The notes beneath the pieces are model-generated. The model worked only from the letters and a program-made list of their open reading frames with translations, did not search any database and was not told the origin of the DNA. This document shows, piece by piece, positions 10,758-64,000 of a DNA stretch of 64,000 nt; the stretch's first letter is position 1, and each line of letters starts with the position of its first letter. The position numbers were made by a program, and so were the translations under genes. This DNA comes from Chlorokybus atmophyticus. Taxonomy: Eukaryota; Plantae; Mesostigma and Chlorokybus algae. Location: contig RHPI01001507.1 in the NCBI GenBank assembly GCA_009103225.1, forward strand, positions 416,805-480,804. The letters run 5' to 3'.

Positions 10758-10776
10758 GAGAGAGAGAGAGAGAGAG

Positions 10777-37081: not shown

Positions 37082-37133
37082 CCAATTTCATCAATGCAGA
37101 ATATGTGCATGAATTGTAAAATCTGACAAGTAT

Positions 37134-41375: not shown

Positions 41376-41428
41376 AGCATCCGTCCGTGCATGAGGCTCC
41401 TTCCTATCCCCAGCAGTAGCCTCCTCAC

Positions 41429-42457: not shown

Positions 42458-42551
42458 CTCCACTAACACACTACACTCTGCTTCCGAATGAAAAGTGTAA
42501 ACGCCCACCCACTTCCTCTGTCACCTTCGTAAACCGTGCTCCGATACCAGT

Positions 42552-43223
42552 TGTGACGGTGCTCGTGCCTTGTCACCTGTGAGTTGGTCCAATCCACAAC
42601 CCTCTCACCAAGACACGGTATTCACACCGGAACCTTGCCCCCTCTGCCAAGCACACACGCGCGCCCCGCCACTCGCGTACGCACGCGCATGCGCTCGAAG
42701 CTACACACCGACTTGTGTAGCGCCTTGGATCGTCACACAAGCAAGCACACACCAGTGGACACACGCTAGCAACCTCTTCTAGCCACCACCAAGCTTGCAC
42801 ACCAGAAACTAGGGAGCTAAAGGTTGTCTTGCAAGTTGTAGTATGTCACTTTTATACCTACCAGTCTGCACATGCTACTGTCTAGACGATTTTAGCGCTA
42901 GAAGGAACTAGAAGCTAAGATATTCTTGCAGATTCTTGTAGTACACTTCTAGAACTTTCCAACGCACCAAAGATCTCCTAATTTGCTGCTCATATGGTCA
43001 AGTTATACTACTTGGCGCCAGGCCCTTCCAGAAATCTGGTCGAGCCCTTCTCGACTGGCCCTCCGTTTTCTGGCACCTTCCGGACTGGTCTTGGGGCACC
43101 GGTCGATATCCGCGGCAGACTCATAACTCGCCGATATCCGCCACAAGTCATTAAAAACATGTACCTTACAAATAAGGCCTAAAACGGCCATGAAAATCAC
43201 AGAATTTGGCCTTGACTGTTACA
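42552..43223 (-). repeat. 5' LTR of chromovirus copy 2
   Basis: It is adjacent to the PBS and contains the TATA-like GGTATAAAAG. Confidence 0.97.
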
Positions 43224-43659: not shown

Positions 43660-44623
43660 AATAGCTGGGAGTCCTGGCTGTGCATGCGTATGCTTGGGCG
43701 GTCGAAACATGAAAATCGGCTGGAAACGTACATAAAAGGGGCATTCCACCTGTGGGTGTGGACCTGTGTGCAGCTTCCTCGGACATGGCCTGCATATCGT
43801 TTATTCGCAGCAAGGGAGTGGCAGCAACTGACCGGCGCTAAATTCCATGTAGCATAGTGGGCGTGTAGTGTCGTTGAGAAACACTTGGGTTTGCCCGCTG
43901 AAGTCCTTGCGCACATATACCCAGTGTTGTTCAATTGTAGCTGATTGTTGCAGAGCATATCTTAGCACGGTGAGGTATTCACACAGTTTCTGCCACAAGG
44001 TGGTATACAAGTTGAGCTGTTGCTGCCTTCTGGCGTCTCTATGTTCGAATATTTTTGCCTGGACCAATTGTTGTTGCAGAAGCAGTAGTACTCACACATG
44101 CTTGAGGTGCATGTAGCACATAGCTCATGGCTAAAGGCGCACCTGCTCAGCCCAATCACAGTCAGCAAAGTACTTTTGCTAGTTTCTGAGCTCGGCATCA
44201 GCTATTGCCAACTGAATCTAGAAGTCTTGCATAGTGGATGGCTGTGGGCTCCACTGTTTGCAAAAACGCCAGTTGGATGCTTGCACGCGTAAGGCGCTGG
44301 TCAACTCCACGAGCTGCGGTGCAACCTCCGTTAGTAATGTGTGTTTGCAACCGCGGCAGTGTTGCAATGTACCTTTTGCTGTTGCATGTGGTTTGGAGTG
44401 TTTGCTTGGCTTTTGTTATTCGTGCAACCTCTTGTTGCTGAAGTTGGCACTTTTGTTGCAGAAATGTTGTTTTCTGCTTGTCTTTGGCCATCCTCCTGGC
44501 GCAATGCAGCATATGTGTTAGCATTGTTCAGGTCGTCGCGCACATGGGCGTAATTTTGGCTCATCTTTTTGCTGTGCATAAGTTTGTAGCATATTCACTT
44601 ACTTGCGCGTTTCAGCTCAAGGT
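43660..44623 (-). pseudogene. Coiled-coil + RING-finger gene remnant (paralog 2); its 5' part resumes beyond 63467
   Basis: (C)PLCY...LPCCE*TICRPCPRKLHTGPHPQVECPF at about 43863-43730, and LYTTLWQKLCEYL. Joining the flanks across the AGGT TSD restores KRLHREHLELKRASK. Confidence 0.65.
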
Positions 44624-44860
44624 TGTCGGGTCGGGGGAAGTCGAGGGTCACACTGTCTCGGGCCGCTGCAGGGAAAGTCATGCGTGCTGGTCCTGGTGCT
44701 GCAACATGTTATAATCTGTGGCAAAAGTAAAAGATAACCCATCTTGTATGGCGAGGAGTGCTTGGTGGAGCCGCTCCACTGTTGCTGAACGCGGACATGT
44801 GGAGGCGGTGTCTTCCTTAATATACATGCTGTGCTGTAGGACACACAGTCAACAAGCCAC
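44624..44860. repeat. Repeat A (237 bp), terminal copy
   Basis: About 94-95% identical to 45446-45682 (manual count). Confidence 0.97.
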
Positions 44861-45443
44861 TACTATAGGTAGTGCTGTTTACACAGTTCTTTGCATGAGC
44901 GGAAAATGTGTTACACTGTTAAGTGAGGTGAATGAGCAAGCAACACGTGAATACTATGCCCTGACTGATGCCAACAAGCACACTGCAACCAGGCCCACAG
45001 CGATGACAAGCACAATGCACACGCGAGCATGCACAGGCTCTCACACAATGAGGGGGTTCTTGGTAATCGGGATGGCGTGTTCGTAGTTCAAGTCGTTTCA
45101 CAACGCTCATAGCTTTCTCACTGACAGTGTCACCAGCTGATCTGGTGAACACTGTGATTACTTATACAAGTCAAATCATGACTGTTCAGAACATAAGCTA
45201 ACGGTCATATGGAGGCTATTTTCACAGCGATTGTCACTCGATATAGATCACAACTTATAACTGAACTCACAACTGAACAGCTACGCGCGGTGCCTATGTG
45301 GGCTATGGTCGTGAGCTACCCTGAAGTCATGACCTAGCTACTGGTCAGGGACGCGCGCGCATTGGTATGTCGATAGGAAGGGCGACGATTGTGATGTAGA
45401 CATGCCCGAGGAAGGCTGGTATGTGTGGGCACCAGGCATGACA
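44847..45443. repeat. Repeat B (about 597 bp), internal copy, sharing a 14-bp overlap with A
   Basis: About 93-94% identical to 62859-63463. It contains TATA-like TGTATAAG and TGTAA motifs in element orientation. Confidence 0.97.
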
Positions 45444-45445
45444 GC

Positions 45446-45682
45446 TGTCGGGTCGGGGGAAGTGGAGGGTCACACTGTCTCGGGCCGCTGCAGGCAAAGT
45501 CATGCATGCTAGTCCTGGTGCTGCAACATGTTATAACTTGTGGCAAAAGTAAAAGATAACTTAGCTTGTATGGCGAGGAGTGCTTGGTGGAGCCGCTCCA
45601 CTATTGCTGAACACGGACATGTGGAGGCGGTGTCTTCCTTAGTATACATGCTGTGCTATAGGACACACAGTCAACAAGCCAC
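45446..45682. repeat. Repeat A' (237 bp), directly after the polypurine tract in element orientation
   Basis: It is separated from B by the dinucleotide GC (45444-45445) and abuts a C7 run (45682-45688; G7 on the element strand). Confidence 0.97.
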
Positions 45683-45749
45683 CCCCCCTGAGCTTCTGGG
45701 GAGCTTCAGAGCTCAGCTGCTAATGCAGGTGAGGAGGGCCGTTGGCGCG

Positions 45750-45884
45750 GCAATCGTCGCACCAGTACTCCTACATGGGTATTGCGTCGAATGGGGGCTC
45801 CAGATAGTAGCAATGCAGGCCCTTGTTACAGCCATCGCAGAGCATCATGAGTGCGTCATCGCCGGCGCTGCCGCAGCGTTCACA
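45750..45884 (-). pseudogene. PHD finger at the integrase C-terminus
   Basis: CERC-x10-LCDGC-NKGLH-CY(Y)-LEPPFDAIP..YWCDDC is a C4HC3 pattern with one Cys mutated to Tyr and one stop. Confidence 0.9.
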
Positions 45885-45985
45885 TCGTGTGCTGTGGGCG
45901 GGGCGAGGGTGCTAGATGCGCGCGAAGCCTGCTACGTAGGGGAGGTAACATGGCGCGCAGTTCACCATGTTGTCTTTCAACCTCT

Positions 45986-47200
45986 CTAATTCTGACCAAG
46001 AAGGTCCAGCACTCCTGTGGGGTACACCTTGAGTACCTTGTAGATGGTGCGGCCCACGGAGGTGTTGAGCGTGTCCTTGGTGGCTGCCATGCGGTAGGCA
46101 AAGTCACCTGCTTGAAACCGCCATTGGCGCTCTTTGTAAAAGCCGCTTCGCACGCGCTTGTAGCGCAAAGTGTCACGGTGCTGTGCGATGCGCAGGTTGT
46201 GGAAGGCCATCGGGACGGTGTGCTCGAACAGCGTGGCACGTGTGGTGATGTCGTGGTGCATCCAGTCGGGATCGTCGAGGTTGTCCACCACACGGTCTAC
46301 TTCCCGCTGTGCACGAAAGGGAAGCAACGGCGGACGCCCGAACAGCAAGTAGTATGAGCTGTACTTGCGCAGCGCCGCCTGCTTCGACAATTGGTAGCCA
46401 AGAGCCACCCACGGAAGGTGGTCGTCCCAGGTGTTCTTCTCATAATCCAGCACGTACTTGCGGAGTGCCTTCTTGATAGTCTGCACCGTCCGCTCGGCGA
46501 GACCGTCGGCTTGAGGGTGGTCACGCGAAGTACGGCGATGATCGATGTAGCATCTATCCAGCAGGATGTCGAACTCCCCTCTGAACTTAGTGCCCTGGTC
46601 GGTGATGACCTCGGCGCAGCTGCCGAACCAGTTGAGGACATGGGAGAGGAAAGCTTGAGCCACCCCCCTGCTGCTCTTATCGGGTAATGGCACCAGCTCC
46701 ACCCATTTGGAGAAGTGTTCGATCATGACCAGGATGTAGCGGTTGCCCCGCACCGAGGGTGCCAAGTCTACCTATATGTCGAGTCCCCAGCGGTAGAACA
46801 GCCCAGAGATGGGGAGAGGGTGCAATATGGCGCTGCGTGTGTTGAGGCTGGCACGTACCATGTCACACTGCTGGCAGCGTCTGACGAACCCCTGCATCTG
46901 TTTGGACAACTCATACCACCAATATTGCGCCCTTACCAGGCTGACGGTACGCTTGACACCAAAGTGCCCAAGATTCGTGTGAAGGGCAGCGATGATGCCC
47001 TCGCGTGTGGCTGGTGTTGGCACCTCCTTGTCCTCGTCCTGGACGCGGCGGTACACTTTGTCATCCGCCCACCGGTAGTGGCGGGTGCGCTGACTGACAC
47101 GATCTTTCTCTCGTGCAGTCATATTGGAGGGAAGCTGGCCACTTTGAAGGAAGGAGAGTGATGGCTTGTCTAGCCATATGTCCTGCCTGGTGTCGGTGGG
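45986..47200 (-). pseudogene. Integrase (H2C2 zinc finger + rve core)
   Basis: LHTNLGHFG...YWW...CQQC, WGLD, ITDQG, HPQADGLAER. Frameshifted. Confidence 0.93.
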
Positions 47201-47439
47201 TGCCAGCTCGGTGTCGTCGACTCCGATGTCGACCGCGTGGACGTCCCCTAGTGGTGTGGTCGCTGTGGGGTCGGTAGCCTCAAGGGCAGGAACCTCTTCT
47301 GTCGTCGAGGCGGTGTTAATCTGGCGCCCTGACCGTAATGCGGCAGCAGCAAACATGGCCGCCATGGTGGGAGCTGCTGCTGCGGGGCCGAGCTCGTGCC
47401 GGGCTCCGGTTGCATCGTTGGTAGTGCGGTGAGGGTTGC

Positions 47440-48660
47440 GACTGAGGCCATCGGCGTCCTGGTTGGTGAGGCCGGCGCGGTGGTCGATCTCGAAGTCATA
47501 CTCCTGCAGCTACAGGGCCCAGCGAGCAAGTTATCCTGTCAGATGTTGGTTGGTCATTAACCACTTGAGTGGCTGATGATTGATGATCTGAAATTGACGA
47601 CCAAAGAGGAAAGGTCTGAAGAAGGAGATAGCCCATGCTGCAGCAAGGCACTCCCCCTTGTAGCTGCTGTGGTTGGCCTCAGCGCTGTTGTTGCTTCGGC
47701 TGGCATACGACACCACCCGCTCCTGCTTGTTCTCATCGTGCTGTACCAGCACAGCCCCCATCCCAAGTTTGCTCCAGTTGGTGTGGAGGATGAAGGGCTT
47801 ATTGTAGTCAGGACGTTGCAGGATGGGAGCAGTGGTGAGCCTGCCCTTTAGCTCCTCAAACGCCTACTGTTGTGGCCCCTTCCACGCAAACTCCACCTCC
47901 TTCTGCAGGAGCTCGTTGAGGGGTCGCGCGATCTTTGCCGCCAAAGCCTCCACCTTTGCCTGCTATACGTACGCATCGTGGGGCACAATCATGTGCCCTA
48001 GGTAGGGTACCTTGCGAGTGAAGAAGGTGCACTTGTTGGGGTGCACTGTTATCCCCACCCCCTTGAGTTTCTCCAGCACTTCCTCGATATGCTGCAGGTG
48101 CTCGTCGTTATTGCGACTAAAGATGAGAATGTCGTCAATGTAGCATCGCGCGGAGTTCAGCCCCTTCACGGCTTTGTCCATGACGCGCTGGAACTAGGCA
48201 TGAGCGTTCTTCAGTCCGAAGGCATGACCTTCCACTGGTACAGCTGCCGGTTGCCCCAGAAAGAGGTCTTGTGCTTGTCCTCCTCCTTGATGACGATCTG
48301 GTTGTACCCTTGTCGCATGTTCAGGATGCTGAAGACGGTGCAGTCTCCTACATCATCAAAGATACCCTCTGCAGTAGGCATTGGATACCTGTCTTGTTTG
48401 GTCTTGTTGTTGAGGGGGCGATAGTCGCCGCACATGCGCCGGTCTGTTCAGTTGCCTGCTGAATCCTTCTTCAGGGGCATGACGGTCGCGGCCGCAAAGT
48501 CCGATGTGGACCTCAATCAGGACTGCATCTAGCAGCGCCTTGCACCTCTGCTCCACCAAGTCTTCTTCCAACTTGGAGAGTCGGTACTGTCGTAAAAACA
48601 CCGGTTCGGTGTCTACCAACTCGATGTCCATCTGGTAAACTGAGCAAACACCCAGTTCCC
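47440..48660 (-). pseudogene. RT + RNase H of the DNMT-bearing element
   Basis: KKDSAGN*TDRRMCGDYRPLN, WKVMPFGLKNA, CYIDDILIFS, HTNWS..GMGAVL, SSYKGECLAAAWAI and DADGLSR. About 30 codons of the connection region are deleted. Confidence 0.95.
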
Positions 48661-48929
48661 TTACACTGCAATTGTATTGACTTCTCCATTTTGTAAAGGA
48701 GAGCCTCCGGTTGTTCTCGTGTCTGGCCTGTAGCCAGTGGTCTAATGGCATGGGATCAACAGGTGGCGTTAGCAACTACTGGGATGTCCTCCACAGTGAC
48801 TGCTGTCTGCTCCTCCATATGGGCGATCTCTCTCGAGGGCGGTGTGTGCCGCTTTGGTCTCTTGCACGCGATCGGCCCACCCCCCTGCCAGGTGTTCGAG
48901 CTCCTAAAAGGACACATGGCGATCTTGAA

Positions 48930-49896
48930 GAGCAAAGCACATTTCCAATAACCATACCATGCTGTTTTGACCCATGGCGCGTCCCAACAATTGGCATTGC
49001 TGATTGTCGGTTAGCGTGGAACCTGTGATATTGTCTGGAGAGAAGCCCATGGCGCGTTCGCGCTCACGTGCGTTGAGTTCCTCCAGCTGGCCTGTGTTGG
49101 AATCCAACACCATGCCCTGCGCCGTGGTTGCGGAAGGCGTACGTTCCTGAGTAGGACACCAGCGTGGGGAGCGCACGACGTGGTTGCCCAGGCTGGTTGC
49201 ACTGGTAAAATTGGTGGTGATCGCGTCGAGTGACTGGTTGTGATGTTCGACCAGTCCAAGATAGTATCGACTGTCAGATTGCGTGGACGACAGCTGTGCA
49301 GATATTCAGCAGCAAAGAGATCTTCGACCGTTGAGAGGTTGGTCCCACTTGGCACGGACGCGATGAGCACGGGAGCCATGCCGCGCTGCGTTAATTTTGA
49401 GAGGATGCTCCAGTAAGGAACACACCTGTCGGAAGCTGTTGGCCACGTAATGGCGCTTATCGTCCTCGAAGTGCACATATTCGATGATGTATCCTGGAGG
49501 CCTGGACAGCTAGTTGCTCTGCAGAGTTTTGCTGACACGCATCAGATGCTAGAACAATTATGAGCGAGGATCAGCGAGCCCTTGGCCGCTGCCTGCTCTG
49601 GAGTGCCCTTGACACTCCCATCCTGCTATCAGCAGGTCGATGTTGCCCACCGCTAGGAGGTGATCTGCAGTGATTAAACGGATATTCTGTGGCAGTGTCT
49701 TCAGACTGCCTTGCAATGCCGATAGCGGCAGTCGCTGCGGGTAGCATTTGTGTAGGTGGCGCAGGTCACCTGCGCCACGGTAGTGGGCCCGGGCAATCTG
49801 TGCGTGTGGATCAGGGTCACAATACTTGGTGACCGTCGCGCCGGTGTTGAGAACAGAAAAAAGGCCACTATCTATTCCTCTAAATAGTTCCAACAC
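48930..49896 (-). pseudogene. C5 cytosine DNA methyltransferase domain inside pol
   Basis: Motif I VLELFRGIDSGL; motif IV IAGWECQGHSRAG..GLADPRS (Cys at 49614-49612); motif VI IIEYV; motif VIII NAARHGSRAHRVR; motif IX/X ELNARERERAMGF...QLLGRAM. The order is canonical, with several stops and frameshifts. Confidence 0.92.
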
Positions 49897-50313
49897 GCTG
49901 ATGCCTTATTGTCGCCGGAATACGTGAAACTCCACTACTGCAGTGGCCACCTGGTGTTGTTCCTGGACAGCAGCTTGGTCCTCGCAGAGAGGGAATCATG
50001 AAGTGAGCCGCGGTCTGGTCAGTAGCAGATGTGCGACCACCTGTGCGCGCCAGCCGTGTTCCGCTGGTTGCTGGTGGGCCACTTCCTCAGTGGCATCTTT
50101 TTGAGACTTGTCGTATGGGATATGAGAGTCTTAGACCGCATTGTGGGTGACCACCGCAGATGATTTGTTAGTGCTTGCCGACAACGACCTGTAGGTGGAT
50201 ATTGCAGCTGACCTTTAATGGGAACGAGTGCGGGCCACCAACTCGAGAGGCGGATATCCTTGAACCTTTCCGTCCTCCTCATCCCAATGAGGACGAAACC
50301 AGGCCTTTTCTGT

Positions 50314-50700
50314 TCAGCAGTCCAGCCCCATGCCAATAGGGAAGTTGAAGTCTTGTCCCAACAACAGGTTGAAGGATCCTGCGTCGGTGACCACACACTT
50401 CTGTATGACCTCGGTGCTGTGGGACGGGTCCACTCCTATCAAGCGAATGCACAGGGCTTGCTTGGTGATACCGATCACCTTGTCACGGCTGCCGGTTGCG
50501 GTGTCGAGCACGTACGGGCACGGCATCAGCTCAGCGCTGGTGATGCCAAGGTCACGTGCGAGGTAACGTCCAATAATGACAGGCTGGGCTCCAGAGTCCA
50601 GTATCACCCGCTTGGGTGCTTGCCCATTCATCGTGACATGCTTACATTGGTTCGCGATCATGGCCGCGTTGGCGTGGATGCGCAGTCGCTTGAATCGTCG
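50314..50700 (-). pseudogene. Retropepsin aspartic protease
   Basis: RVILDSGAQPVIIG and FNLLLG. Confidence 0.9.
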
Positions 50701-51125
50701 GTAGCGTGTGCGTGAGGTGTCTGCTGCTGCAGTCTCCTCCGGTGGTGTCCAGCGCATGCGCTCGACACCGCACTGCGCAGTGCGGCAAGCGTCCCTCGCC
50801 CAGCTGGGTCTTGCGCACTTCCTTGACCGCGGCCTGGCCCGAACCGTCATTGCCTTGGCTGTTGATAAACACGCTGTGGCCTGGGTGCCGGCGGTGCTGC
50901 CTGCGGCTGTCCCGGTTGTGGCGCCGGGGGATTGCGTCTCTGTATGGCCGGGGTCATTCCTAGCGGCGTGGTTAGTGGCTGTTGGGGCAACCCGTGGAGG
51001 GCCGGGTGTTTGTGGGCCCGCCTCCCGTGTGGCTTGTTCTTCCACATAAGTCCAGCGTACTGCATGAGCTGCCTCCCAAACCAGTGTACCTTCCCATGTG
51101 GCTGTTGGGTTGTTGATCACGTCAC

Positions 51126-53191
51126 CACACGGATTGACGTTCGGGGACCATGCATGGTCCTTCCACGGACCCCGCGGGCCATACATGGTCCGTCCCCGCG
51201 GACCACGAGTGTCTGGTCCGCGAGGGACGGACCGTCCATGGTCCTTGTGGGGCCCCAACACACCTGGCGCGCAGTCGCGCACCACATATGGTCCGTGCCG
51301 CACCTTGTATGGTGCGGCACGGACCAGTACTCTACGCTGGTTCCTGGATGCGGACCAGGAGTGGGCCCGCGGCTCAGCGGCCCGGCAGCCGCGCACCGTA
51401 CATGGTCCGTGCCGCACCATGTATGGGGCGGCATGGACCAGCAATGTTGCTGGTTGGCGGCCCTGCAGGGCGCGCTACACGTGTACCATGACTGAAGTAT
51501 CGTTATTGCATGTACGAGTACATAGGTACATTGTGTGTATCATTTAATAAATGACAGGCCGCACCGACTGTCGCCGCTTACCATAAAGTGGACAGTCGCA
51601 AATGGTCGGCGGCTGTCAATGTATATTGACAGCCGGCTGTCCATGTACATTTTAACTTGACAGCCGCCGACCAGTTGCGGCTGTCCACTTGTGGCCTATA
51701 TATGTATAAATGGATATGTGTATACATATAAATATATGTGTATATATACACACATATATATATATGTATACATGCATATGTATATATATGTTGACAAATA
51801 TACGTGTGTGTGCATGTAGGAATAGGCTTAAGGTATACAAGCAAAAATTGTTGACGTATTGCGGCGCAATTTGCAGCCGTGCAATTACTTCATATCTATC
51901 ATTTCATGTACATACATTGTTGTAAGTAGATTAATGCGCGTACACATGTGCATTAGACCTTTCATATGCAAAATTATATACATCTTACATAATGTAATAA
52001 AATATGATTGTACAAAGTGTTATAATTACTGTACAATTACATACTCTAAAATAATAACTATATCAAATTTACATTCATGCATTGCGCGTGTTAATTGCAT
52101 TAAATATAGTTCGTTGGTTATTACATTATCATAATGTTCACAACCGTTAACATCATACCATGAATACATATGTTGATGCTGTTCGCATGTTGCATTGCTA
52201 GGCGTAGTTTATGGTATGATTGGTTTTAATATTTTGTATGAAACGAAAGCGCAAGCAATGTCAGATGTTATGACTTATAGCCTTACTTGTATTACCTCAT
52301 AAATGGCCTATAAAAGCCTCATGCGACCACAGAATCACGACAGCCCGATAAGGTACACTGGCTGCATTGACAGTCGCAATTTGGCTACTATCACTAAGCA
52401 TTGTCACAATGACAGCCCCTAACAAGTCTACAAATTGTACTGGCGTATTGACAACCGCCGAGTTCGCGGCTACCGGTATGTTGTTTACCACCGTCCATGT
52501 AACTGGTACAGCCTATAAATGCTACAATTGCATAGGCTCAGCCTGTGGGCCGATCAAAGCGACACACAATCTCCGACTGTCCATCGGCAATTACTGCCGC
52601 CGGCCGACAGTCGCCAAGCGGCTGTCGGCGCATGCAATAAACTATATGATATAGGTTGCCATGCGACCCTACCGGTACGTGCACTTGTAGCTTAGTGGTT
52701 AAGGCGTCGTCTTTGATATGCTAAAGGTGCTGGGTTCGAATCCGGCCGATGCGTGTGTTCTTGACTAATCATTCCACTAACGCCGCGAAGCTGGCCGCGG
52801 CCTCGTGCGCCGCAGGTTGGGCGTGGCCGGTGCCGCCGGCAAAGATGTGTCAACTTTTACTGCATTTGCACTCATATTTACATTGGTCCATAATAAATTT
52901 CGGTCCATGGTCCGCTGGCCGGACCAGTTATGATTGAAGTTTTATAATGATATGATTTAGTCCCTGGTCCGATGGCCGGACCATACCTGGTCCTGACGCA
53001 ACAGTAATCGGCCGGACCTTAAGTGGTGCGTACCAAGGGACAATGGTACCATTCACGTGAAATTCGGACCATGAATGGTCCGACTGTCGATGAAAAACAG
53101 ACCATGCAAGGTCCACCGATTTCATTTAGCAGGGGGAAATCCCGGTCCTGCGTCACGGACCATTCATGGTCCTTGAACGTCAATCCGTGTG
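51126..53191. mobile_element. Non-autonomous CACTA/EnSpm-like element no. 1 (2066 bp)
   Basis: Perfect 17-bp TIR CACACGGATTGACGTTC, extending to about 35 bp with 3 mismatches, and a 3-bp TSD CAC (51123-51125, 53192-53194). Dense subterminal GGACCA(T)/(A)TGGTCC repeats lie at both ends. Removing it restores the host reading frame (CWS|DVINNP). Confidence 0.92.
52681..52753 (+). pseudogene. tRNA-derived pseudogene / SINE-like head
   Basis: 73 nt, with A box TAGCTTAGTGG (52688-52698) and B box GGTTCGAATCC (52733-52743) at tRNA spacing. The acceptor stem pairs about 5/7 and the anticodon stem does not pair. Confidence 0.75.
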
Positions 53192-55070
53192 CACTCCAGC
53201 AGTGATTCTGAGGCATGGGCTGGAGATACACTGCGCGCAAAAGCCGCGCTCTTATGTCGTGGGTGATGGTGGGGACCCTTAGGATCTCTGCCATGTAGGC
53301 ATCCCATCTGCCATTGACCACTCCCACCTCCAACACCGTTGTTGCTCGCGCCTGCACAGTGAGGTAAATCTCTGGCTGTTGAACATGCTGCTCGTAAGCA
53401 GCTGCAATGCGTCGGCGTTGCCGCGCTGCTTCCACCCCTGGCAACCTCAGTATGGCCTCTTGTACTTCTTTCAAGGTGTCAGTGGCTGTAGAGGCAACCT
53501 TGTCATAGGCTTGCCGTACTAAACGCAGGAAGGCGTCCAACCAGAACAATCTGGTGCTAAAGGCGAACAGGGGGACTGCGGGGTGGTTGGTGACTAGCCA
53601 AGTCATTAGTCTTGCTCGAGCTGCATTACCACCATCTCGCATCCCCAGCATGCATCTCAGGCCGATGCCTTCTTGTCGGTGCAGCATGGTTGCTTGTTGC
53701 AACAGGGCAGTACATAGTTGCTGTTCCCCAATTGAACCTGCTCCATCTCGTTGTGTCCACCCTTGCGGTGTGAGGTAGCCTCTCCCTGGATCCCGTTGAT
53801 CTTCAGGCAAGTCTTCCAACAAGGCAGGTAGCAGCGGAGCGATCACCCCCCTGATTTATTGGGCCATCGCCCTCGTCTAATCGACGTTGGGCCCACCGAC
53901 GAGAGGTGTTGTGCTTGATGATGGGCCAGCGACTATTGGCTGAAAAACGCCAGCGCGAGCATCGGCAAGGGCGTGCGCTCTTGCGTCGATTGCCGCCGCT
54001 TGATCCTGTCGCCAGGTGAATGCCTGTTCCAGCGCGGTGTAGCGCTCATGACGTCGAATGGTATTGAGGGGCCTCAATGCTTCGTTGTCACCCAGAGGCA
54101 TGTCGGCTGTATCAGCGATGTGCTGCTGCAAATTGGGTTGCCGGTCCCCATACGTGTCTAGTGGGCTGGGCTCAAAGGGTTCATGACGGACTGGTGCGGG
54201 TTGGCGTGGCGCCGTCTGCATATCGTTACGCAGAGTCCAGAACAACTGCAGTGCCAGCTCCAGTACAACAGGCATTCTGACAACGAAGACACGGTCTCGC
54301 ATGGGAGGTGCCGTGCCGGCGAGGATTTCATCCTCCAGCCGTCGCTGAGTCTTAACTGGCAGTGTGTGATATTCAGGCAATGGGAAGACTCGATCACTGC
54401 GTTTAACGCGTGTTGTGCGCTCCCCTCCGCGCCCAAAAGCAATGGTAGTGGGATCTGCCCCACGCATGATGGTCTCCCAAGCACGCTCAGCTTGCTGACC
54501 TCGCTGGATAGCCTGAGTGACGTCGAGGGCGGGCAATGTAGCTGAGCGTGTTGCTGTAGCGGCAGCAGGCTCGATGATGGCACTGTCGGTGGTGGCGAGA
54601 GCGGTCTCAAAGCCTGCTGGCATAGGTGGTTCTGCGGTTGCAGCAAGACCGGTGCGACCTGCTGCTGCAGGGCCGGTGACAGCTGTGGCTGTGGCCTGCG
54701 TACTCACTAGTGTGGGCGCGACAGTGCTCACTGGTAGACCAGTTTCCAGTGAGATTGGAGCGGTTGCTGCTAGCGTTGACGGAGTTGACGTCGTAGCCGG
54801 TGTGACCGTTACAGCTGGTATAGTACCACTGGTGGCTTCAGAGGAGGTGGCTGCTGACGATGTTGCAGCTTCCCCTCGCACTCGCCGAGATGGTTGAATA
54901 CGGGACGGAGTGCTGGTGTCTCTCGTGCGCTTTGAAGCCATCAGTGCCCACCGGGCAGAGTAACAGGCGCGATAGTCCTGCTCCGTGTCTTCCTCCAAGC
55001 GTGCCATACGTGCCATGAGGGCAGCCATATGGTCATTAGCTGGCGGTTGGGCTGGAGCCTTGGCGGCCAC
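53019..55070 (-). pseudogene. Unknown polyprotein segment (ORF3 + ORF4) between the gag zinc knuckles and the protease
   Basis: ORFs 55070-53877 and 53846-53192 are in the same frame, separated only by TAG and TAA. ORF4 continues into the PR ORF once CACTA no. 1 is removed. Confidence 0.7.
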
Positions 55071-55237
55071 AGCAGCAGCGCGCGGACGTCCTTCCAGTCC
55101 CTTACGCTGAGGAGGGCGATTCTTCCCCCTGTAGCCTTGCTCTTCCTTGCGAGCGTTGGCGTAGTAGTTGGTGGGTGCGGTTATATACCTCCGGTGTCGT
55201 TGCTGTTGTAGCCATCAGAGCTGTTGCCGTTGTGGCC

Positions 55238-56040
55238 TCAAGTGTTGTTGCTGTTGTAGCCACCAGAGTTGTTGCCGTTGTAGCCACCCGAGTTGTTGCC
55301 GTTGAGGCCTCCAGTGTTGTTGCTGCTGTGGTTGTTGACGGGTCTCAACTCGGGAAACTTGAGCCAGTAGACTGACTCAGCGTGGCGTGTCTTGTGACAG
55401 TAGTCGCAGGCCAGAGTTGAGTACCCTTCGGTGCACTCCTTTTGGTAGTGCCCATGCCGTCCACAGCGATAACACAGCACAGGGGCAGACAAAGCAGTAT
55501 GCGCTGATCGTTTCCCTTTGTCGCGTGCTGGTGGAGCGTCGCGGCCACGATCGCGGCGCGGAGGCTCGACAGTCGTACTGGATACAGGCCGTGAGGCGCT
55601 GCGGTTAGTGTCCAGCACTGCCTTCTCATACATCAAGCGCTTATGGATGGCTTGTGCAGTCTCGCAAGCTTCCTTGAGCGTGCAGCCAAGGGGCCTGCTA
55701 TAGTTCAGGGTCAGGCGCGTCGATTCGCTCAGGGTGGCATCCAACTCATTGACATATACCACTGCAGCCGCCTCATCGCTGACGATCTTGTAGTCAGTGT
55801 CCTTCAATAGCCCTTCCAGTCTGGAGTACAGGCGTAGGGGGTCTGCTGAAGGTATTACATGGGTCATGCTTGTATCCGGTCAGCTTGCCCTTCATATAGG
55901 AGTCGAGGGTCGAAGGTACCAGGAAGAAGCGCGTGGACTCCAGACTTAGCAAGACGGTCGAGTCATGACGGACTCCGGACAAGGCTGCTTGGTAGAGCCT
56001 TGGGAGAAATTGCGTAGCTTTGTGAATACGTAAGCTTAGC
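55238..56040 (-). pseudogene. gag: gag-like ORF 2 with tandem zinc knuckles and Asn/Gly repeats
   Basis: ADPLRLYSRLEGLL, CYRCGRHGHYQKEC, CDYCHKTRHAESVY(C)W, followed by 24-bp NGNNSGGY-type repeats. Confidence 0.8.
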
Positions 56041-56290
56041 AAGCGTGGCTTAGCTTGTTGGAAAGCTCTAGTTGTGAGCTAGACAGCGTAGCTTACAGAA
56101 CAGCAATCGGCTGAGTATAGCGCACGCGGTGCTTGCCAATGTAGACGTGTGTAGAGACTGGCGGGGTATAAAGCCCAGACTTGTTGCAATGAAGAAGAGA
56201 GGTCACGATGTAGCATGTGTGCGGATGCTATGGCGGCAGTAGCAGTCATGCTCTTGTGTTGATGTTGTTGGCGTGTCACTTGCACGTGTG

Positions 56291-56959
56291 TGTAACAGTC
56301 AAGGCCAAATTTTGTGATTTTCATGGCCGTTTTAGGCCTTATTTGTAAGGTACATGTTTTAATGACTTGTGGCGGATATCGGCGAGTTATGAGTCTGCCG
56401 CGGATATCGACCGGGGCCCCAAGACCAGTCCGGAAGGTGCCAGAAAACGGAGGGCCAGTCGAGAAGGGCTCGACCAGATTTCTGGAAGGGCCTGGCGCCA
56501 AGTAGTATAACTTGACCACATGAGCAGCAAATTAGGAGATCTTTGGTGCGTTGGAAAGGTCTAGAAGTGTACTACAAGATTCTGCAAGAATATCTTAGCT
56601 TCTAGGTCCGTCTAGCGCTAGAATCGTCTAGACAGTAGCATGTGCAGACTGGTAGGTATAAAAGTGACATTCTACAACTTGCAATACAACCTTTAGCTCC
56701 CTAGTTTCTGGTGTGCAAGCTTGGTGGTGGTTAGCAGGGGTTGCTCGTGTGGCCACTGGTGTGTGCTTGCTTGTGTGACGATCCAAGGCGCTACACAAGT
56801 CGGTGTGTAGCTTCGAGCGCATGCGCGTGCGTACGCGAGTGGCGGGGCGCGTGTGTGTGCTTGGCAGAGGGGGCAAGGTTCCGGTGTGAATACCGTGTCT
56901 TGGTGAGAGGGTTGTGGATTGGACCAACTCACAGGTGACAAGGCACGAGCACCGTCACA
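56291..56959 (+). repeat. 5' LTR of chromovirus copy 1
   Basis: TGTAACA...CGTCACA, with the TATA-like GGTATAAAAG. Confidence 0.97.
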
Positions 56960-56961
56960 AC

Positions 56962-56973
56962 TGGTATCGGAGC
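56962..56973 (+). other. Primer-binding site for initiator tRNA-Met
   Basis: TGGTATCGGAGC versus the canonical TGGTATCAGAGC (G would pair with U). Copy 2 has the same sequence. Confidence 0.9.
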
Positions 56974-57058
56974 ACGGTTTACGAAGGTGAGAGAGGAAGT
57001 GTGTGGGCGATTACACTTTTCATTCATTTCGGAAGCGGAGTGTAGTGTGTTAGTGGAG

Positions 57059-58087
57059 ATGGAGGATGCTCGCATGGAAGAGCTTCAAGCTGCCATCTTA
57101 GCATTAAGAGAAGAGCTTCATCACACGCAAGCGGCGGCACAAGCACAACGCGAGGCGTATGAGCATGCGATGGCGCGTGTACAAATTCCCATGGCATTAA
57201 GCTCGCGCGTGCATGTGAAGGTGCCAAAGCCCAAGCCATATAGGGGTCAACGTGATGGAGATGCAGTGGATGAATGGATTTTTCAAGTATCGTCTTGGTT
57301 GAAGCTCACGGAGGTGCCCACGCATCTGCACGTGGAGGTTGCAGCGACATTGCTTGAAGGTGCAGCACTTGTGTGGTGGAGGCATCGATGTACGCGTGTT
57401 GCAAACGGGTTGGCGCTACCATTGACCACCATGGAAGAGTTGGCACTGGAGGTCAGGCATCAATTTGTTCCCGTTGAGAGCGTGAAGGCCGCACGCGACA
57501 AACTTGCAGCCCTTGTGCAAATGGGGTCGGTGATGGCGTACACGGCCGCGTTTCAGCGATTGGTGATGTCCATACCCAATATGACCGAGGAGGAGCAGTT
57601 GGACAGGTATACACGTGGTTTAAAACCTTTGGGGCGTAAAGAAGTGGAGCTACGGGACCCGAAGACACTCGCGGAGGCTATACGCATCGCGGAGCGTCTC
57701 GACGCGTTGTACTTCAAGTCCACCACAAGAAACACTGACTGGAGGCAAAGGCATGGTGATCAGCCCCGGGGAGGCTTTCAACATGCATGGAGACGAGGAG
57801 AACCAAGTTCAGCACTTGCCAATGGAGGTGGAGCTGACTCTGGGCCTGCACCAATGGAGGTGGGTGCCATACACACGCATGGAAGTGAGGCGAAGCACGG
57901 CGGACGTGGTGAAAGAGGTAAAGGTGTGCGCAAGTGTTATGCGTGTGGGTCGACGGAGCATTTGGCGTACGGATGCCCCAAACGAAGCACGCAAAGGCCA
58001 ACACCGGATGGCAACCCTCGCCGTGATCGTCGCGTCAACACCATGGAGCAAAATGGCGTGGAGCAGGAAAACGACTTCCCCCAGTAG
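57059..58087 (+). CDS. gag: gag of copy 1 (342 aa)
   Basis: Essentially identical to the copy 2 gag, with a CX2CX4HX4C knuckle. Confidence 0.95.
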   Translation: MEDARMEELQAAILALREELHHTQAAAQAQREAYEHAMARVQIPMALSSRVHVKVPKPKPYRGQRDGDAVDEWIFQVSSWLKLTEVPTHLHVEVAATLLEGAALVWWRHRCTRVANGLALPLTTMEELALEVRHQFVPVESVKAARDKLAALVQMGSVMAYTAAFQRLVMSIPNMTEEEQLDRYTRGLKPLGRKEVELRDPKTLAEAIRIAERLDALYFKSTTRNTDWRQRHGDQPRGGFQHAWRRGEPSSALANGGGADSGPAPMEVGAIHTHGSEAKHGGRGERGKGVRKCYACGSTEHLAYGCPKRSTQRPTPDGNPRRDRRVNTMEQNGVEQENDFPQ

Positions 58088-61052
58088 GTGAGGAGGCTAC
58101 TGCTGGGGATAGGAAGGAGCCTCATGCACGGACGGATGCTGTGACATTTCCATTAAAGAAGCAAGAGGAGATGGCTTTGAACGCGCCAATGGTGGTGAGT
58201 TATGCAAACGAGGAGACAACAAAGTACTTCGGGCTTCGAGCACACATTTGCGATGACCAAGGACGATGGAGAGAGTGTAAGCTCATGATTGATAGCGGTG
58301 CCAACAGCAACTTCATGAGTATTGATATCGCGCGGCGTTACGGTTGGCTTTCGTCATTACGAGGAGGTGAAGTGAAGCTCGCTGATGGAGAGCCACCCTC
58401 TGGAGGTGATGGCGCTGCGTTTATGACCAAAGAGTTGTGCGTTCGCATTGGGAAGATGAAGGAGAGCATGCGATTTTGCTGCATCACCCTACGGAACGGG
58501 TTTGATGGGATTTTGGGACTACCGTGGCTATGGCAACATAATCCAGCCATCAATTGGAGGAAGCGCGTGCTCACCATCGAGCGAAACGGTGGAGAGTCCA
58601 TTCAAGCTGCATCGGACGTCATCGAGGCGCGGCACGCACAATTAGGTGGTACGACAATTGCCCAGATCTCTTATGTGCAATTGAGGAAGTTATTGTCTCC
58701 ACGGAAGGCAAAGGCTGCATGGTTGTGCGTGGTGCGCGAAAACACTGCAAAGTCAGCACCGGAGCTGAGTGACGATGTTCAGACGGCTACTATGGACCCC
58801 GAGGTGTGTAAACTTGTTAAAGAATACCAAGATATCATGGTGGACGGACTTCCATCTGGTCTACCACCTCCACGGAGCGTAGACCACCGTGTGGAGCTGA
58901 TTGAGGGCGTGCACAAGCCACCGTATCGACCCGTATACAAGTTGTCACCTTTGGAACTGGAAGAGGCCGAGAGGCAGGTGGCGGACTTGCTGAAAAGAGG
59001 CTACATCAGGCCTAGTAAGTCCCCCTATGGTGCACCTATTTTGTTTGTACGAAAGAAGAACGGGAGCTTGCGCATGTGCGTCGACTACCGAGCTCTCAAC
59101 AACATCACGAAGAGGAATTGCTTTCCACTCCCACGTATCGACGAGTTGCTGGAGCAATTGCAAGGTGCGCAGTACTTCACAACACTTGATCTTGCTGGAG
59201 GTTATCATCAAATTCGCATCGCGCCCGAGGATGTGGAAAAAACAGCTTTTAACACACGTTATGGGCACTACGAGTGGTTGGTCATGTCCTTCGGACTTAC
59301 GAACGCACCGGCAACATTTCAAATGCTTATGAACAGCGTTTTTGCTGACTTGATTGGTAAGGGAGTCCTCGTGTACCTCGACGACATTTTGGTGTACGCG
59401 ACAACAAAGGAGGAGCACGTGGCACTTCTACGGCGCGTGTTGCAGCGTTTGCGCGAACACAAGTTGTACGCCCAGCTACAGAAGTGCAAATTCTTGCTTC
59501 GAGAGGTGGAGTACCTAGGCCACATTGTGTCGCATGAAGGCATCAAGCCGGACCCCAACAAAGTGCGGGTGGTGCGCGAGTGGGCTGCCCCGACCAATGT
59601 AAAGGAGGTGATGTCCTTTGTAGGCCTTGCGGGGTATTATTGCAAGTTTATCATGGGGTTTTCGCGCATAGCTGCTCCCTTGACTACCCTACTCAAGAAG
59701 GGAAAGCATTGAAGCTGGTCAGCAATAGAGGAACATGCATTTGCTGCGTTGAAGAAGGCGCTGACGGAGGCACCAGTCCTGGCTCACCCCAACATGGAAA
59801 AGACATTTATTTTGGCTTGCGACGCGTCCGACACAGCCGTAGGAGCTGTTTTGCAGCAAGACCATGGCAACGGCCTTCAACCAGTAGCATTCTTCAGCAA
59901 GAAGATGAGTGGTGCGGAGCTGAATTACCCCGTGCACGAGAAGGAACTTTTAGCGCAAGTCATGGCGCTACGACAATGGCGTTGTTTTCTGGAAGGCAAA
60001 AAGTTCGTGCTTGAGACGGATCACTCTCCACTGAGGTACTTACAAACACAACCTCATCTGAGTCGCAGACAAGCTCAATGGCTTGAGTTCTTTCAACTTT
60101 TTGACTTCGATATCAAGTACAAGCCCGGTACGTCAAATGGTGTTGCTGACGCGCTGAGCCGGCTTAATGCAATTGAGGCACTCGCTCAAGTGCAGCCCGA
60201 GTGGACCGACCAGATTCGGCAAGTGCTTCGTGAAGACACGGAGGGTATGAAAGTGTTGCAAGAGCTGGAAAATACAGCTACGGACACAAGTGGGCACTGG
60301 TCAATGCGCGACGGGCTGCTGTGGCACCATGGGCGCTTGTACATCCCCAACGTCGCGCATATCCGTGTGAAGTTGCTGAAGGAAGCTCATGATGTGCCCA
60401 TTGCTGGTCACCAAGGGTTGGAAAGGACTTTGGCAAGCTTAAAACAGCGTTTTTACTGGCGAGAGATGCATCGCGATGTGCGCGACTACGTGGCGTTGTG
60501 CGACGCATGCCAAAGGGTGAAGGCAAGCAACCAAAAGCCAGGTGGGTTGCTGCAACCTCTCCCTGTGCCATTGTCCAAGTGGGAGCAAGTTACCATGGAC
60601 TTTATCACGGGGCTACCAAAGACAAAAGAAGGGTACGACGCTATACTTGTGTTCGTCGATAAAACCAGCAAAATGGTACGCTTGGCACCGTGTAGTGAGT
60701 CTTGCACGGCACCGGAGGCAGCACGCTTGTTCGTGAAGCATGTATTTCGTTCTCATGGATTACCACGAAGCATTGTGAGTGATCGCGACCCGCGCTTTAC
60801 AAGTAAGTTTTGGGAGGCGCTGCATAGTGCACTGGGTACCACACTGAAGTTTAGCACGGCATTCCACCCGCAAACTGATGGGCAAACGGAGCGGGCCAAC
60901 CGTGTGATCGAGGACAACCGCCAGAAAGGCCGCCCCCCGAAGTTGGCACGGATGGTGAACCAGAGTGGGAGGTAGAAGACATCCTTGGTGAGAAGTTTGT
61001 GCATGGCGTACGCAAGTTCTTAGTGAAATGGAAGGGCTATCCGTTGCATGAA
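58027..61052 (+). pseudogene. pol: pol of copy 1 (-1 frame to gag), with a nonsense codon and deletions
   Basis: PR, RT, RH and INT motifs as in copy 2. TGG has become TGA at 59710-59712, and the INT C-terminus is deleted. Confidence 0.95.
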
Positions 61053-61723
61053 TGTAACAGTCAAGGCCAAATTTTGTGACTTTCATGGCCGTTTTAGACC
61101 TTATTTTGCAAGGTACATGTTTTTTATGACTTGTGGCGGATATCGGCGAGTTATGAGTCTGCCGCGGATATCGACCGGGGCCCCAAGACCAGTCCGGAAG
61201 GTGCCAGAAAACGGAGGGCCAGTCGAGAAGGGCTCGACCAGATTTCTGGAAGGGCCTGGCGCCAAGTAGTATAACTTGACCATATGAGCAGCAAATTAGG
61301 AGATCTTTGGTGCGTTGGAAAGGTCTAGAAGTGTACTACAAGATTCTGCAAGAATATCTTAGCTTCTAGGTCCGTCTAGCGCTAGAATCGTCTAGACAGT
61401 AGCATGTGCAGACTGGTAGGTATAAAAGTGACATTCTACAATTTGCAATACAACCTTTAGCTCCCTAGTTTCTTGTGTGCAAGCTTGGTGGTGGTTAGCA
61501 GGGGTTGCTCGTGTGGCCACCGGTGTGTGCTTGCTTGTGTGACGATCCAAGGCGCTACACAAGTCGGTGTGTAGCTTCGAGCGCATGCGCGTGCGTACGC
61601 GAGTGGCGGGGCGCGCGTGTGTGCTTGGCAGAGGGGGCAAGGTTCCGGTGTGAATACCGTGTCTTGGTGAGAGGGTTGTGGATTGGACCAACTCACAGGT
61701 GACAAGGCACGAGCACCGTCACA
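61053..61723 (+). repeat. 3' LTR of chromovirus copy 1
   Basis: Direct repeat of 56291-56959, followed by TSD GTGTG. Confidence 0.97.
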
Positions 61724-62646
61724 GTGTGTATGTCAACAGGGTCCTCATTGGGCTTGCGCCGGAACCGCCTCAACTCCTCCACTTTACTAGTGGTTTGCGG
61801 TGGGAAGGTGCGACGAAGTGCAGCGTATGGATCCTTGAGTGGAGAGTTAGAGATGGCAGCACCCACAGTGATGGCTGGTGCGCGCAGTGCAACTGACTCA
61901 AGGGTGAAAGCACTGCCTCCCGCACGAGAGCCAGGTGTTGCCATAGGTAGGGGCGTGCCCACCTCAACGGCTGCAGTTCGTTGTTCTTCAAGGATGGCAG
62001 CGAAATGGTCCAGGATCCGGGCCCGTCCCGCGACCGTCTTGATCTCAATCTCTGCAGGGGTCAGGTTGACGATCACCAACTCCGATTCCTCCTCCTCTGC
62101 TCTGTCAATGGCTGCCGCTATCGACAACCCGGTAGCTGCAGCGGGAGTGACAGGTGGAAAGACGGCTGCTGGATGGTGCAGTGATGCAGGTGCTATGGTA
62201 TTGGCGAGCTCGCCATAACCATCAACTCGATGCAGTTCAGCAACAAACTTTTAGACATCATGTGCTTCATGGTCCAGATACTGAGCAGCAATGTGAAAAG
62301 AGATCTCATCTGACCAGTTTTTGTTCTTCAGAGCCTGCTTTCGCATCTTGGAGTGGAACTTAATGATGAATTCGTCCAGAGAGTTAGTGCCAGCACGTCC
62401 GGAGAAGTGCAGGGACGTGGTTGAGCTGGAAGACTCCATCTCGTAGTCGTCACTGTCGCACGAGAGTGGGGAAGCTCGATGCCGTTGAGTGGACAGAAAC
62501 GGAGTGCAGTCGGTAATAGCACGTGAGCCTCTGCTGCTACGATCGTTGCTCCCGTCACTGATCCGCTCATAGGTGAGGTTGGAGGTTGGGCTCCAGATGC
62601 GGAGGTCACCCTCGTCTATTGGAGAGAACGGGGTGGGCCTGCTCAT
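61724..62646 (-). pseudogene. gag-like ORF 1 of the DNMT element (continues, degraded, at 56290-~56080)
   Basis: FSGRAGTNSLDEFIIKF, IAAQYLDHEAHDV*K and KVEELRRFRRKPNEDP resemble capsid-region motifs of retrotransposon gag. Confidence 0.7.
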
Positions 62647-62858
62647 ACAGCTAGTCCAAAGGTGAAAGTGTATGCAGGGTAGAGTGTTTGTACTCTACCG
62701 TCTGTCTCGATGCCGCTACCACTCATCACACTAGTGCTTATGTGCGCACTAGGTAATGACAGTGATAACGAATGCCCAGGGATGTGTCCCTAGATACAGA
62801 CTGCACTATCTGATGCAGAATGCAACGCACTCACTTGAGCAAAGAGGGTGACACTGTG

Positions 62859-63463
62859 AGTCAACAAGCCACTACTATAGGTAGTGCTGTTTACACAGTT
62901 CTTTGCATGAGCGGAAAATGTGTTACACTGTTAAGTGAGGTGAATGAGCAAGCAACACGTGGATACTATGCCATGACTGATGCCAACAAGCACACTGCAA
63001 CCGGGCACACCAGGCCCACAGCGATGACAAGCATGATGCACACGCGAGCATGCACAGGCTCTCACACAGTGAGGGGGTTCTTGGTAACTGGGATGGCGTG
63101 TTCGTAGTTCAAGTCGTTTCACAAGCTCTTAGCTTTCTCACTTACAGTGTCACCAGCTGATCGGATGAACACTGTGACTACTTATACAAGTCAAATCATG
63201 ACTGTTCGGAACATGAGCTAACGATTATATCGAGGCTATTACCACAGCGATTGTCACTCGATATAGAACACAACTTATAATCGAAATCACAACTGAACAG
63301 CTACGTGCGGTGCCTTTGTGGGCTATGGTTGTGAGCTACCCTTAAGTCATGACCTAGCTACTGGTCAGGGACGCGCGCGCGTTGGTATGTCGATAGGCTG
63401 GGTGACGGTTCTGATGTAGACATGCCTAAGGAAGGCTGGTATGTGTGGGCACCAAGCATGACA
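62859..63463. repeat. Repeat B' (605 bp), the only terminal repeat at the element's 5' end
   Basis: Homologous to 44847-45443 and followed directly by the TSD AGGT. No A copy is adjacent. Confidence 0.97.
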
Positions 63464-64000
63464 AGGTGTTCCCGGTGGAGTCTCTTGAGTTGATCACTTC
63501 AAACCTGAACCGCTTGCTGTATGAGTTCCTTAATGAACTGTGTTTATAGACGGGGCATGGTTTCTCCTGCGACGTAGTGTTAGCAAGACGATGAGTTGTA
63601 TCATGTTTAAACTACGAGTCACACCAATGTCACAATCTCGCACTCGAGATGAACTGGGGGTGTTTGCACTGGAATGTCTTTAACGCTTGGATGGTGTGAT
63701 ATTTCGTGTACCTGATATGTCGCGTAGTGAACATAGTGCTTGACATATGAATGGACATTGTGTTGTGCAGTATCTATAGGTATCGGAAACGCCAATGTGG
63801 TGGCCTGAGCCGTACGTCGGGATCATTCACGATCTCGATTGGGTGACAAATGTTGGCAAGAGATGGTGGCATGGGAGTGGCTTGGTTAATAGGCCATGTG
63901 CCTGCTACAGGCATAAACGCGCCGACAGTAGGATTGAGAGAGAGAGAGATTGTGGCGTGTCACTGCTGCTTGGCCCTAATATGCATGTTAATAGTCAACT

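Follow-up and report, generated by a model that had tools for sequence, protein, structure and literature searches.

A 64,000-nucleotide stretch of the Chlorokybus atmophyticus genome (assembly GCA_009103225.1, contig RHPI01001507.1, positions 416,805 to 480,804 of the forward strand), here called the window, contains a decayed Ty3/Gypsy retrotransposon at 44624–63463 on the minus strand. Its direct repeats are split: one segment, B′, stands at the 5′ end, and three, A′, B and A, follow the genes, with the dinucleotide GC between A′ and B. We consider it somewhat probable that, in the lineage of this element, the repeat made by reverse transcriptase (RT) and the ends used by integrase (IN) do not coincide, the long terminal repeat (LTR) being A-nn-B, with nn a two-nucleotide spacer, and complementary DNA (cDNA) with joined LTRs being cut inside that LTR. 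The Gypsy lineage concerned, with the domain order PR-(DNMT)-RT-RH-IN-PHD (PR, protease; DNMT, DNA methyltransferase; RH, RNase H), occurs in green algae and mosses.

Structure of the Chlorokybus element

Repeat pairs were defined with a repeat finder and BLASTN within the window, and junctions were read directly. On the minus strand, the element runs from a target-site duplication (TSD; AGGT) through B′, gag-PR-DNMT-RT-RH-IN-PHD, a G-run, A′, GC, B and A to the second AGGT, which confirmed the layout B′-I-G-run-A′-GC-B-A (I, internal region) described in an earlier, sequence-only reading of the window. Neither the repeat finder nor BLASTN detected a further copy of A or B in the 64 kb. The repeats and junctions are as follows.

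44620–44623, no strand: first copy of the TSD, AGGT, read directly; equals 63464–63467
44624–44860, minus strand: A, the 3′-terminal repeat; read on the element strand, it opens with GTGGCTTGTTGACT and closes with ...CCCGACA; 94.5% identical to A′ across 237 bp
44861–45443, minus strand: B, internal copy, joined directly to A; on the element strand it starts TGTCATGCC; 92.2% identical to B′
45440–45449, no strand: palindrome GACA-GC-TGTC at the A′/B junction, spacer GC at 45444–45445; proposed internal integrase site, from direct reading and relatives
45446–45682, minus strand: A′, internal copy directly 3′ of the G-run, from repeat comparison and junction reading
45682–45688, minus strand: G7 run (a C run on the plus strand) adjoining A′, a candidate polypurine tract; both the 14-mer and A′ begin with the last G of the run; direct reading
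62859–62872, minus strand: 14-mer GTGGCTTGTTGACT at the boundary of B′ and the internal region, the same 14 nt with which A and A′ begin; direct reading
62873–63463, minus strand: B′, sole repeat at the 5′ end of the element, with outer end TGTC; repeat comparison and direct reading
63464–63467, no strand: second copy of the TSD, AGGT; direct reading

On the element strand, the outer ends read TGTC...GACA, and AGGT was read at both flanks, which bears out the ends and 4-bp TSD first reported for this locus. On the plus strand, AGGT is followed at the left end by TGTCGGG, and ...CATGACA is followed at the right end by AGGT. The complete plus-strand read-through is AGGT, TGTCGGG...(A)...AGTCAACAAGCCAC, TACTATAGG...(B)...CATGACA, GC, TGTCGGG...(A′)...AGTCAACAAGCCAC in its left part, continuing in its right part with CCCCCC, the internal region, AGTCAACAAGCCAC, TACTATAGG...(B′)...CATGACA and AGGT.

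Two sequence features mark the joins within this arrangement. The A′/B junction, ...CATGACA GC TGTCGGG..., forms the 10-bp palindrome GACAGCTGTC, which occurs once in the window; chance yields one in 13 of 100 shuffles, so the occurrence is not significant alone. The 14-mer AGTCAACAAGCCAC occurs exactly three times (44847, 45669 and 62859), against about 0.03 expected by chance, and it does mark both internal boundaries and the B-A join, as had been claimed. The circularizing role proposed for it is unsupported: in the moss-type and L068 families of relatives, which have the same layout, the internal region and A have only 0–1 nt in common at their starts, compared with 14 in the window. After B′ the 14-mer (also written TGGCTTGTTGACT) starts TGG and may be a primer-binding region.

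The copy is old, with repeats 5–8% diverged, genes broken by stops and frameshifts, and another Gypsy element nested inside. The sequence-only reading held that its removal restores a target reading frame, a claim with weak support: an 87-codon stop-free stretch does span the empty site, mostly upstream of an acceptor-like ttcag site, and this stretch is without homology support.

Coding content

The pol region has the PR-RT-RH-IN order of Ty3/Gypsy, and the integrase combines an H2C2 zinc domain with a DDE (rve) core. The rve match scores 31.2 bits, just below the Pfam cut-off of 32.6, and the core is 47–60% identical to hundreds of Gypsy integrases. By blastx, the internal region is collinear with the relative polyprotein P0356 (PR-DNMT-RT-RH-IN-PHD), with 45% identity over 776 amino acids in RT-IN. 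Together, the H2C2 and rve domains and the Gypsy-collinear matches uphold the description of this locus as a DDE-integrase Gypsy with split repeats. No match to Phage_integrase, the tyrosine recombinase domain, was found in open reading frames (ORFs) of the element. The coding remnants are listed below.

45770–45910, minus strand: PHD-finger remnant after the integrase, with an in-frame stop and in a frame different from that of the IN ORF; translation C..C...LMMLCDGCNKGLHCYYL...WCDDC, with blastx matches to the PHD region of relatives
45986–47365, minus strand: integrase, with H2C2 in ORF 46772–47365, the DDE core in ORF 45986–46765 and a stop between them; Integrase_H2C2 1e-14, rve 2.8e-7; relatives 47–60% identical
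47531–48775, minus strand: reverse transcriptase and RNase H, split over several frames; ORFs, RT_RNaseH 1.9e-19, blastx collinear with P0356
48931–49905, minus strand: C5 cytosine DNA methyltransferase between protease and RT, frameshifted; DNA_methylase 6.5e-4 on ORF 49558–49896, about 32% identity over 340 amino acids to the P0356 DNMT
50347–50637, minus strand: aspartic protease domain inside ORF 50314–51444; Asp_protease_2 4.3e-7
55238–55867, minus strand: gag-like ORF with a CCHC zinc knuckle; zf-CCHC 1e-5

The DNMT also lies between protease and RT in P0356 and P0189, and between RNase H and integrase in many relatives, which suggests that the domain took up two positions, or was captured twice, in a single clade. 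Within the gag-like ORF, a 24-bp tandem repeat of 4–5 units (55188–55329, minus strand) encodes an N/G/S-rich C-terminal repeat. Between the gag-like ORFs and the protease, 51586–51789 holds an inverted repeat of 43 nt together with a near-palindrome that is rich in A and T; the 51.5–53 kb part of the element has no recognizable coding content and may be another insertion.

Recurrence of the layout in relatives

The focal integrase falls in a large green-lineage Gypsy clade whose members, from Haematococcus, Chromochloris and many metagenome proteins, carry a C-terminal PHD finger (PF00628), often with a DNMT (PF00145 present or absent). No protein more than 60% identical to the focal integrase was found in either protein library searched, and the relative P0124 was found on 5-kb contigs only. 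An integrase-core alignment search yielded 80 JGI metagenome loci at 48–57% identity, for which layouts were obtained by self-comparison and junction reading. Insertions were counted as independent after removal of duplicates of one insertion. We left out L089, most likely a chimera among the metagenome contigs: at 12112–18601 it carries a Gypsy polyprotein gene and, directly after it, a series of genes of bacterial type (NAD synthase, ABC/cobalt transport, BioY).

Two layouts were found. The B′-I-G-run-A′-nn-B-A layout is represented by 27 independent insertions among metagenomes and algal genomes. A second layout, B′-I-G-run-A, has no terminal repeat, and unrelated flanking sequence directly follows ...CGACA; it accounts for 26 independent insertions (L008, L037, L047, L053, L071, L078, L084 and about 19 more), or about half of the related insertions. 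B′ starts with TGTCATGCC in both. No ordinary LTR pair, with A-nn-B at both ends, was seen among the relative loci examined, and among about 15 fully covered loci there was neither a copy of A upstream of B′ nor an example of the permutation B-A-nn-B-I-A.

About 17 relatives have both ends available, and nine of these have a perfect 4-bp TSD: L041 (ATGT), L044 (TTTA), L062 (ATAA), L068 (CATA), L052/L070 (TGTG), L037 (CCAA), L047 (GTAT), L053/L081 (ATGG) and L071 (TCCC). Several others match at three of the four bases. A perfect 4-bp match arises by chance with a frequency of 1/256. The sequence-only reading had predicted recurrent B-I-A-gc-B-A copies with 4-bp TSDs and had named ordinary A-gc-B LTRs at both ends as the observation that would count against it; the first were found and the second were not, in relatives rather than in copies of the same family. 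Its suggestion that B-A-gc-B-I-A might also occur was not borne out.

Conserved junctions and boundaries

The succession of a G-run, a short A, CGACA-nn-TGTC and B recurs in every lineage examined, among them L003, the algal relatives L006, L087 and L090, Haematococcus (L005) and the moss-type loci. Most relatives have a run of G5–G9 at the position equivalent to the G7 of the window, and, where a G-run was seen, CGACA-nn-TGTC lies about 50–240 bp downstream of it. The L088 unit has a G5 run only and a variant palindrome. The length of A and the junction in individual relatives are as follows.

L003, the relative with the most similar pol: A about 215 bp, itself reading TGTC...GACA; GC spacer
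L006, ENA contig: A about 225 bp; junction CGACAGCTGTCG
L087, ENA contig: A 238 bp, repeated after a 733-bp B
L090, NCBI GCA_036681025.1: A 63 bp; the contig begins at the start of B
L005, Haematococcus: A 47 bp; junction GCGACA GC TGTCATG; the repeat runs into an N gap, and the element ends are thus not readable
Moss-type loci, JGI metagenomes: A about 180 bp; spacer variable

The spacer nn is AC, GC, GT, AA or TA and tracks the tree of A plus B sequences, and the flanking CA and TG are kept. Because nn varies yet follows the A+B tree, it is inherited and unconstrained, as expected if these bases were discarded in end processing. The B/A join always consists of the end of B that adjoins the internal region and the start of A that follows the G-run.

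Contig L006 has additional repeats around the element. A 61-bp sequence just upstream of its B′ (3088–3148) recurs 401 bp downstream of B (18805–18865), and the downstream copy is flanked by two 375-bp repeats (18434–18808 and 18865–19239).

A proposed model with integrase cleavage inside the LTR

Three boundaries recur: A starts at the G-run, B ends at the internal region, and integration occurs where A ends and B starts. The inserted unit begins with TGTC, the start of B, and ends with GACA, the end of A, within a 4-bp TSD, and the same ends stand head to head inside the element as ...CGACA-nn-TGTC.... Under ordinary rules of reverse transcription, a start of A at the G-run and an end of B at the internal region imply that the LTR is A-nn-B. 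It follows that two LTRs meet at the B/A join and that each integrated copy represents the product of reverse transcription in circularly permuted form, opened between CA and TG within one LTR. The parsing of the LTR as A-gc-B, with integration ends taken from an internal CA-GC-TG site, had been advanced from the window alone and is supported here as the best reading.

On this basis, reverse transcription would yield cDNA with LTR = A-nn-B, and the LTR end and LTR start of that cDNA would become joined, most simply in a circle with one or two LTRs. The DDE integrase would then cut the joined cDNA at the inverted TGTC/GACA site inside the LTR, nicking after each CA on opposite strands, two bases apart, to give recessed CA-3′ ends with 2-nt 5′ overhangs that would be inserted in the target. 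A two-LTR substrate cut in the LTR proximal to the primer-binding site would produce B-I-A-nn-B-A, the form to which the window copy belongs, and a one-LTR circle, or later recombination between A′ and A, would produce the repeat-less B-I-A. Only B-I-A-nn-B-A keeps B on both sides of the genes, and it would therefore be the sole form able to give terminally redundant RNA, assuming that the promoter and the R region lie in B.

We infer both the circular substrate and integrase cleavage at the internal site from sequence. For the chemistry there is precedent in the foamy virus (PMC1180852) and HIV-1 (PMC1905944) integrases, which are reported to cleave the palindromic junction of two-LTR circles. 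A broader proposal is that circular, LTR-joined cDNA is the obligatory form for integration throughout a Gypsy lineage that extends over chlorophytes, early streptophyte algae and mosses, its DDE integrase opening a built-in palindromic attachment (att) site in the LTR; we put this forward tentatively, as an idea that may well be wrong.

Several observations weigh against this model. A two-LTR circle that is opened freely should give B-A-nn-B-I-A equally often, and this permutation was seen 0 times, compared with about eight fully covered independent loci of the split-repeat form (form 2); its absence means that a directional step is missing from the circle model. In the moss-type family, the internal sequence next to B′ begins without TGG, and no tRNA gene that could be matched to a primer-binding site was found in the window or in the relative loci. 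L006 reads B′...G8-A′-CGACA GC TGTC-B without a terminal A. Two contigs, L003:1–18357 and L088:1–20469, consist of 2.2 head-to-tail units of 8262 bp and 1.8 head-to-tail units of 11535 bp, respectively, at 100% identity, with one A-nn-B per unit and no host flank; these would fit circles, but could just as well be tandem arrays in a genome or concatemers created by assembly. The B-I-A copies may all be secondary recombination products. The recurrence itself is drawn from relatives at 45–57% amino-acid identity rather than from further copies of the Chlorokybus family.

Alternative explanations

The strongest rival, which we regard as unlikely but deserving of serious weight, is end regeneration of the kind used by DIRS and PAT elements. 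RNA would run from inside B′ to inside the terminal A, and the internal A′-nn-B would serve as a bridging template that restores both termini, after which integrase would take the linear ends, with no LTR-type circles involved. The layout is identical to the A1-I-B1-A2-B2 arrangement of PAT/Ngaro/TOC1-type elements, a comparison also drawn in a published figure legend discussed below, and this route gives a single permutation, matching the absence of the alternative one. It leaves unexplained why A starts exactly at a conserved G-run and why, in every family, the B/A join combines the end of B′ with the start that follows the G-run. It also predicts abundant B-I-A copies only by way of recombination, and the focal element is without a tyrosine recombinase by both ORF domain search and blastx.

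A linear variant of the cut seems less probable again. Here integrase would cleave the internal site in the 5′ LTR of a linear (A-nn-B)-I-(A-nn-B) cDNA and insert both CA ends, and host end-joining would seal the end of B to the start of A. This yields exactly B-I-A-nn-B/A, with a TSD and a precise B/A join, and needs known integrase chemistry only; no observation tells it apart from the circular route. Its costs are a concerted reaction that leaves a chromosome break for repair, a preference for the 5′ LTR that has no reason, and no direct route to B-I-A.

Two further explanations are very improbable, and both run counter to the data from relatives. If A alone were the LTR (237 bp, TG..CA, with the G-run upstream), then gc and B would be a leader with a primer-binding site, and the locus a tandem or recombinant of two partial elements. 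In favour of this, the G-run borders A on one side and CA closes it on the other, the L003 copy of A has both TGTC and GACA ends, and the window B starts TGTCATGCC-TGGTGCCCAC, which contains TGG. Against it, a copy of A 5′ of B′ was present in 0 of about 15 loci with full upstream coverage, TSDs flank B′...A and not A...A, and an identical 'deletion' junction would have to recur in three families. Just as improbable is a one-off aberrant integration, local rearrangement or misassembly in the Chlorokybus genome, for which the single copy in the window is an argument; the same layout and TSDs occur in 27 independent insertions from other assemblies and samples, and also in L087, and each end of the element, next to its 4-bp TSD, coincides exactly with one half of the palindrome.

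Three more readings were rejected. That the internal region entered a solo B-A LTR in a LINE-like manner or as a nested insertion, duplicating 14 bp, is out, this region being Gypsy gag-pol without repeats of its own and the G-run abutting A′. An LTR consisting of B only, plus an extra A, leaves the B-I-A copies and the G-run/A boundary unexplained. A spacer made anew in each cycle from parental flanks is contradicted by the agreement of nn with the A+B tree.

Relation to known systems

A Gypsy element with this kind of layout is already in print. De Mendoza et al. 2018 (PMC5890265), in the legend to Fig. 4c, ascribe to KnitGypsy-Dnmt3 of Klebsormidium nitens a DIRS repeat structure with Gypsy domains, so the statement that no DDE-integrase Gypsy with the layout was known is wrong. 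That paper contains no analysis of the TSD, ends or mechanism of KnitGypsy-Dnmt3. In the literature library searched, we found no later paper using the name, and looking there for Gypsy and integrase in combination with split direct repeats returned only DIRS papers. KnitGypsy-Dnmt3 and the focal element both combine Gypsy pol, a captured C5 DNA methyltransferase and DIRS-like repeats in a streptophyte alga; they differ in host, Klebsormidium nitens as against Chlorokybus, an early-diverging streptophyte alga to which a 98% protein match also assigns the window, and the closest integrase found to the focal one has 60% identity. The decayed Chlorokybus element is a new member of a kind that has hardly been described, to which the present analysis adds clade-wide recurrence, TSD and att evidence, and the repeat-less B-I-A class.

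With PAT, Ngaro and TOC1 of the DIRS order (TOC1 being regarded in the literature as a non-autonomous DIRS element), the focal element shares the topology X-internal-Y-X-Y and the storage of joined termini inside the element. In the DIRS group the enzyme encoded is a tyrosine recombinase and insertion leaves no TSD, whereas the focal element has an H2C2 plus DDE integrase, a 4-bp TSD and TG..CA ends. The nested element E2, like other ordinary Ty3/Gypsy elements, agrees with the focal one in gene order, in having a CCHC gag, an aspartic protease and an integrase, and in its TG..CA ends and short TSD. E2, however, has two complete 670-bp LTRs, and in the focal element no repeat is common to both ends, with B′ only at the 5′ end and A′-gc-B-A at the 3′ end.

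Retroviral two-LTR circle junctions (foamy virus, PMC1180852; HIV-1, PMC1905944) likewise present a CA...TG palindrome of juxtaposed ends that a DDE integrase cuts to give integration-competent ends, a reaction that is only proposed for the focal element. The retroviral palindrome arises only where two LTRs are joined in a circle that is a by-product, whereas the focal palindrome is permanent, lies mid-LTR with a 2-nt spacer, and accompanies permutation of every integrated copy.

Whether circular cDNA is a true substrate of DDE integrases is an old question of retrovirology, usually answered with 'dead end'. A lineage whose integrated copies are all circularly permuted relative to what reverse transcription makes, and carry the joined ends within them, would be a natural system for this question. 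If the broader proposal is right, circles would be genuine precursors of integration, and one insertion in two would be a Gypsy copy without LTRs, invisible to standard LTR finders. LTR-based annotation misses or mis-bounds these elements because B-I-A is without terminal repeats and B-I-A-nn-B-A resembles DIRS; conversely, a tyrosine-recombinase element cannot be called from repeat topology alone. A DNMT-bearing Gypsy is now recorded in a second early-diverging streptophyte alga.

Other elements and genes in the window

The element nested within the focal copy is not part of it.

56291–61723, plus strand: younger ordinary Gypsy E2, whose two 670-bp LTRs match at 98.4% identity; its ends are TGT..ACA and its 5-bp TSD is GTGTG

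Two further copies of the E2 family, at 37133–43223 and 25923–31477, also have 670-bp LTRs and 5-bp TSDs. One E2 copy lies 1.4 kb upstream of the focal element in opposite orientation. With three copies in the window, conventional Gypsy elements evidently also live in the Chlorokybus genome.

Elements of the true DIRS type are likewise present. The ORF at 9153–10799 (minus strand) has RVT_1 and Phage_integrase domains and marks a tyrosine-recombinase (DIRS-like) retrotransposon, so DIRS-type elements share a genome with a Gypsy that mimics their repeats. Inverted homologous blocks at 10778–14473 and 17813–21526 are apparently two diverged DIRS-like copies in opposite orientation. Elsewhere in the window, an ORF at 1422–2444 (minus strand) carries a DUF659 domain, typical of hAT-type transposase-derived proteins, and adjoins a block of tandem repeats at 850–1400, and a WD40 ORF at 5713–7179 is 98% identical to a Chlorokybus atmophyticus (JGI Chlat1) protein.

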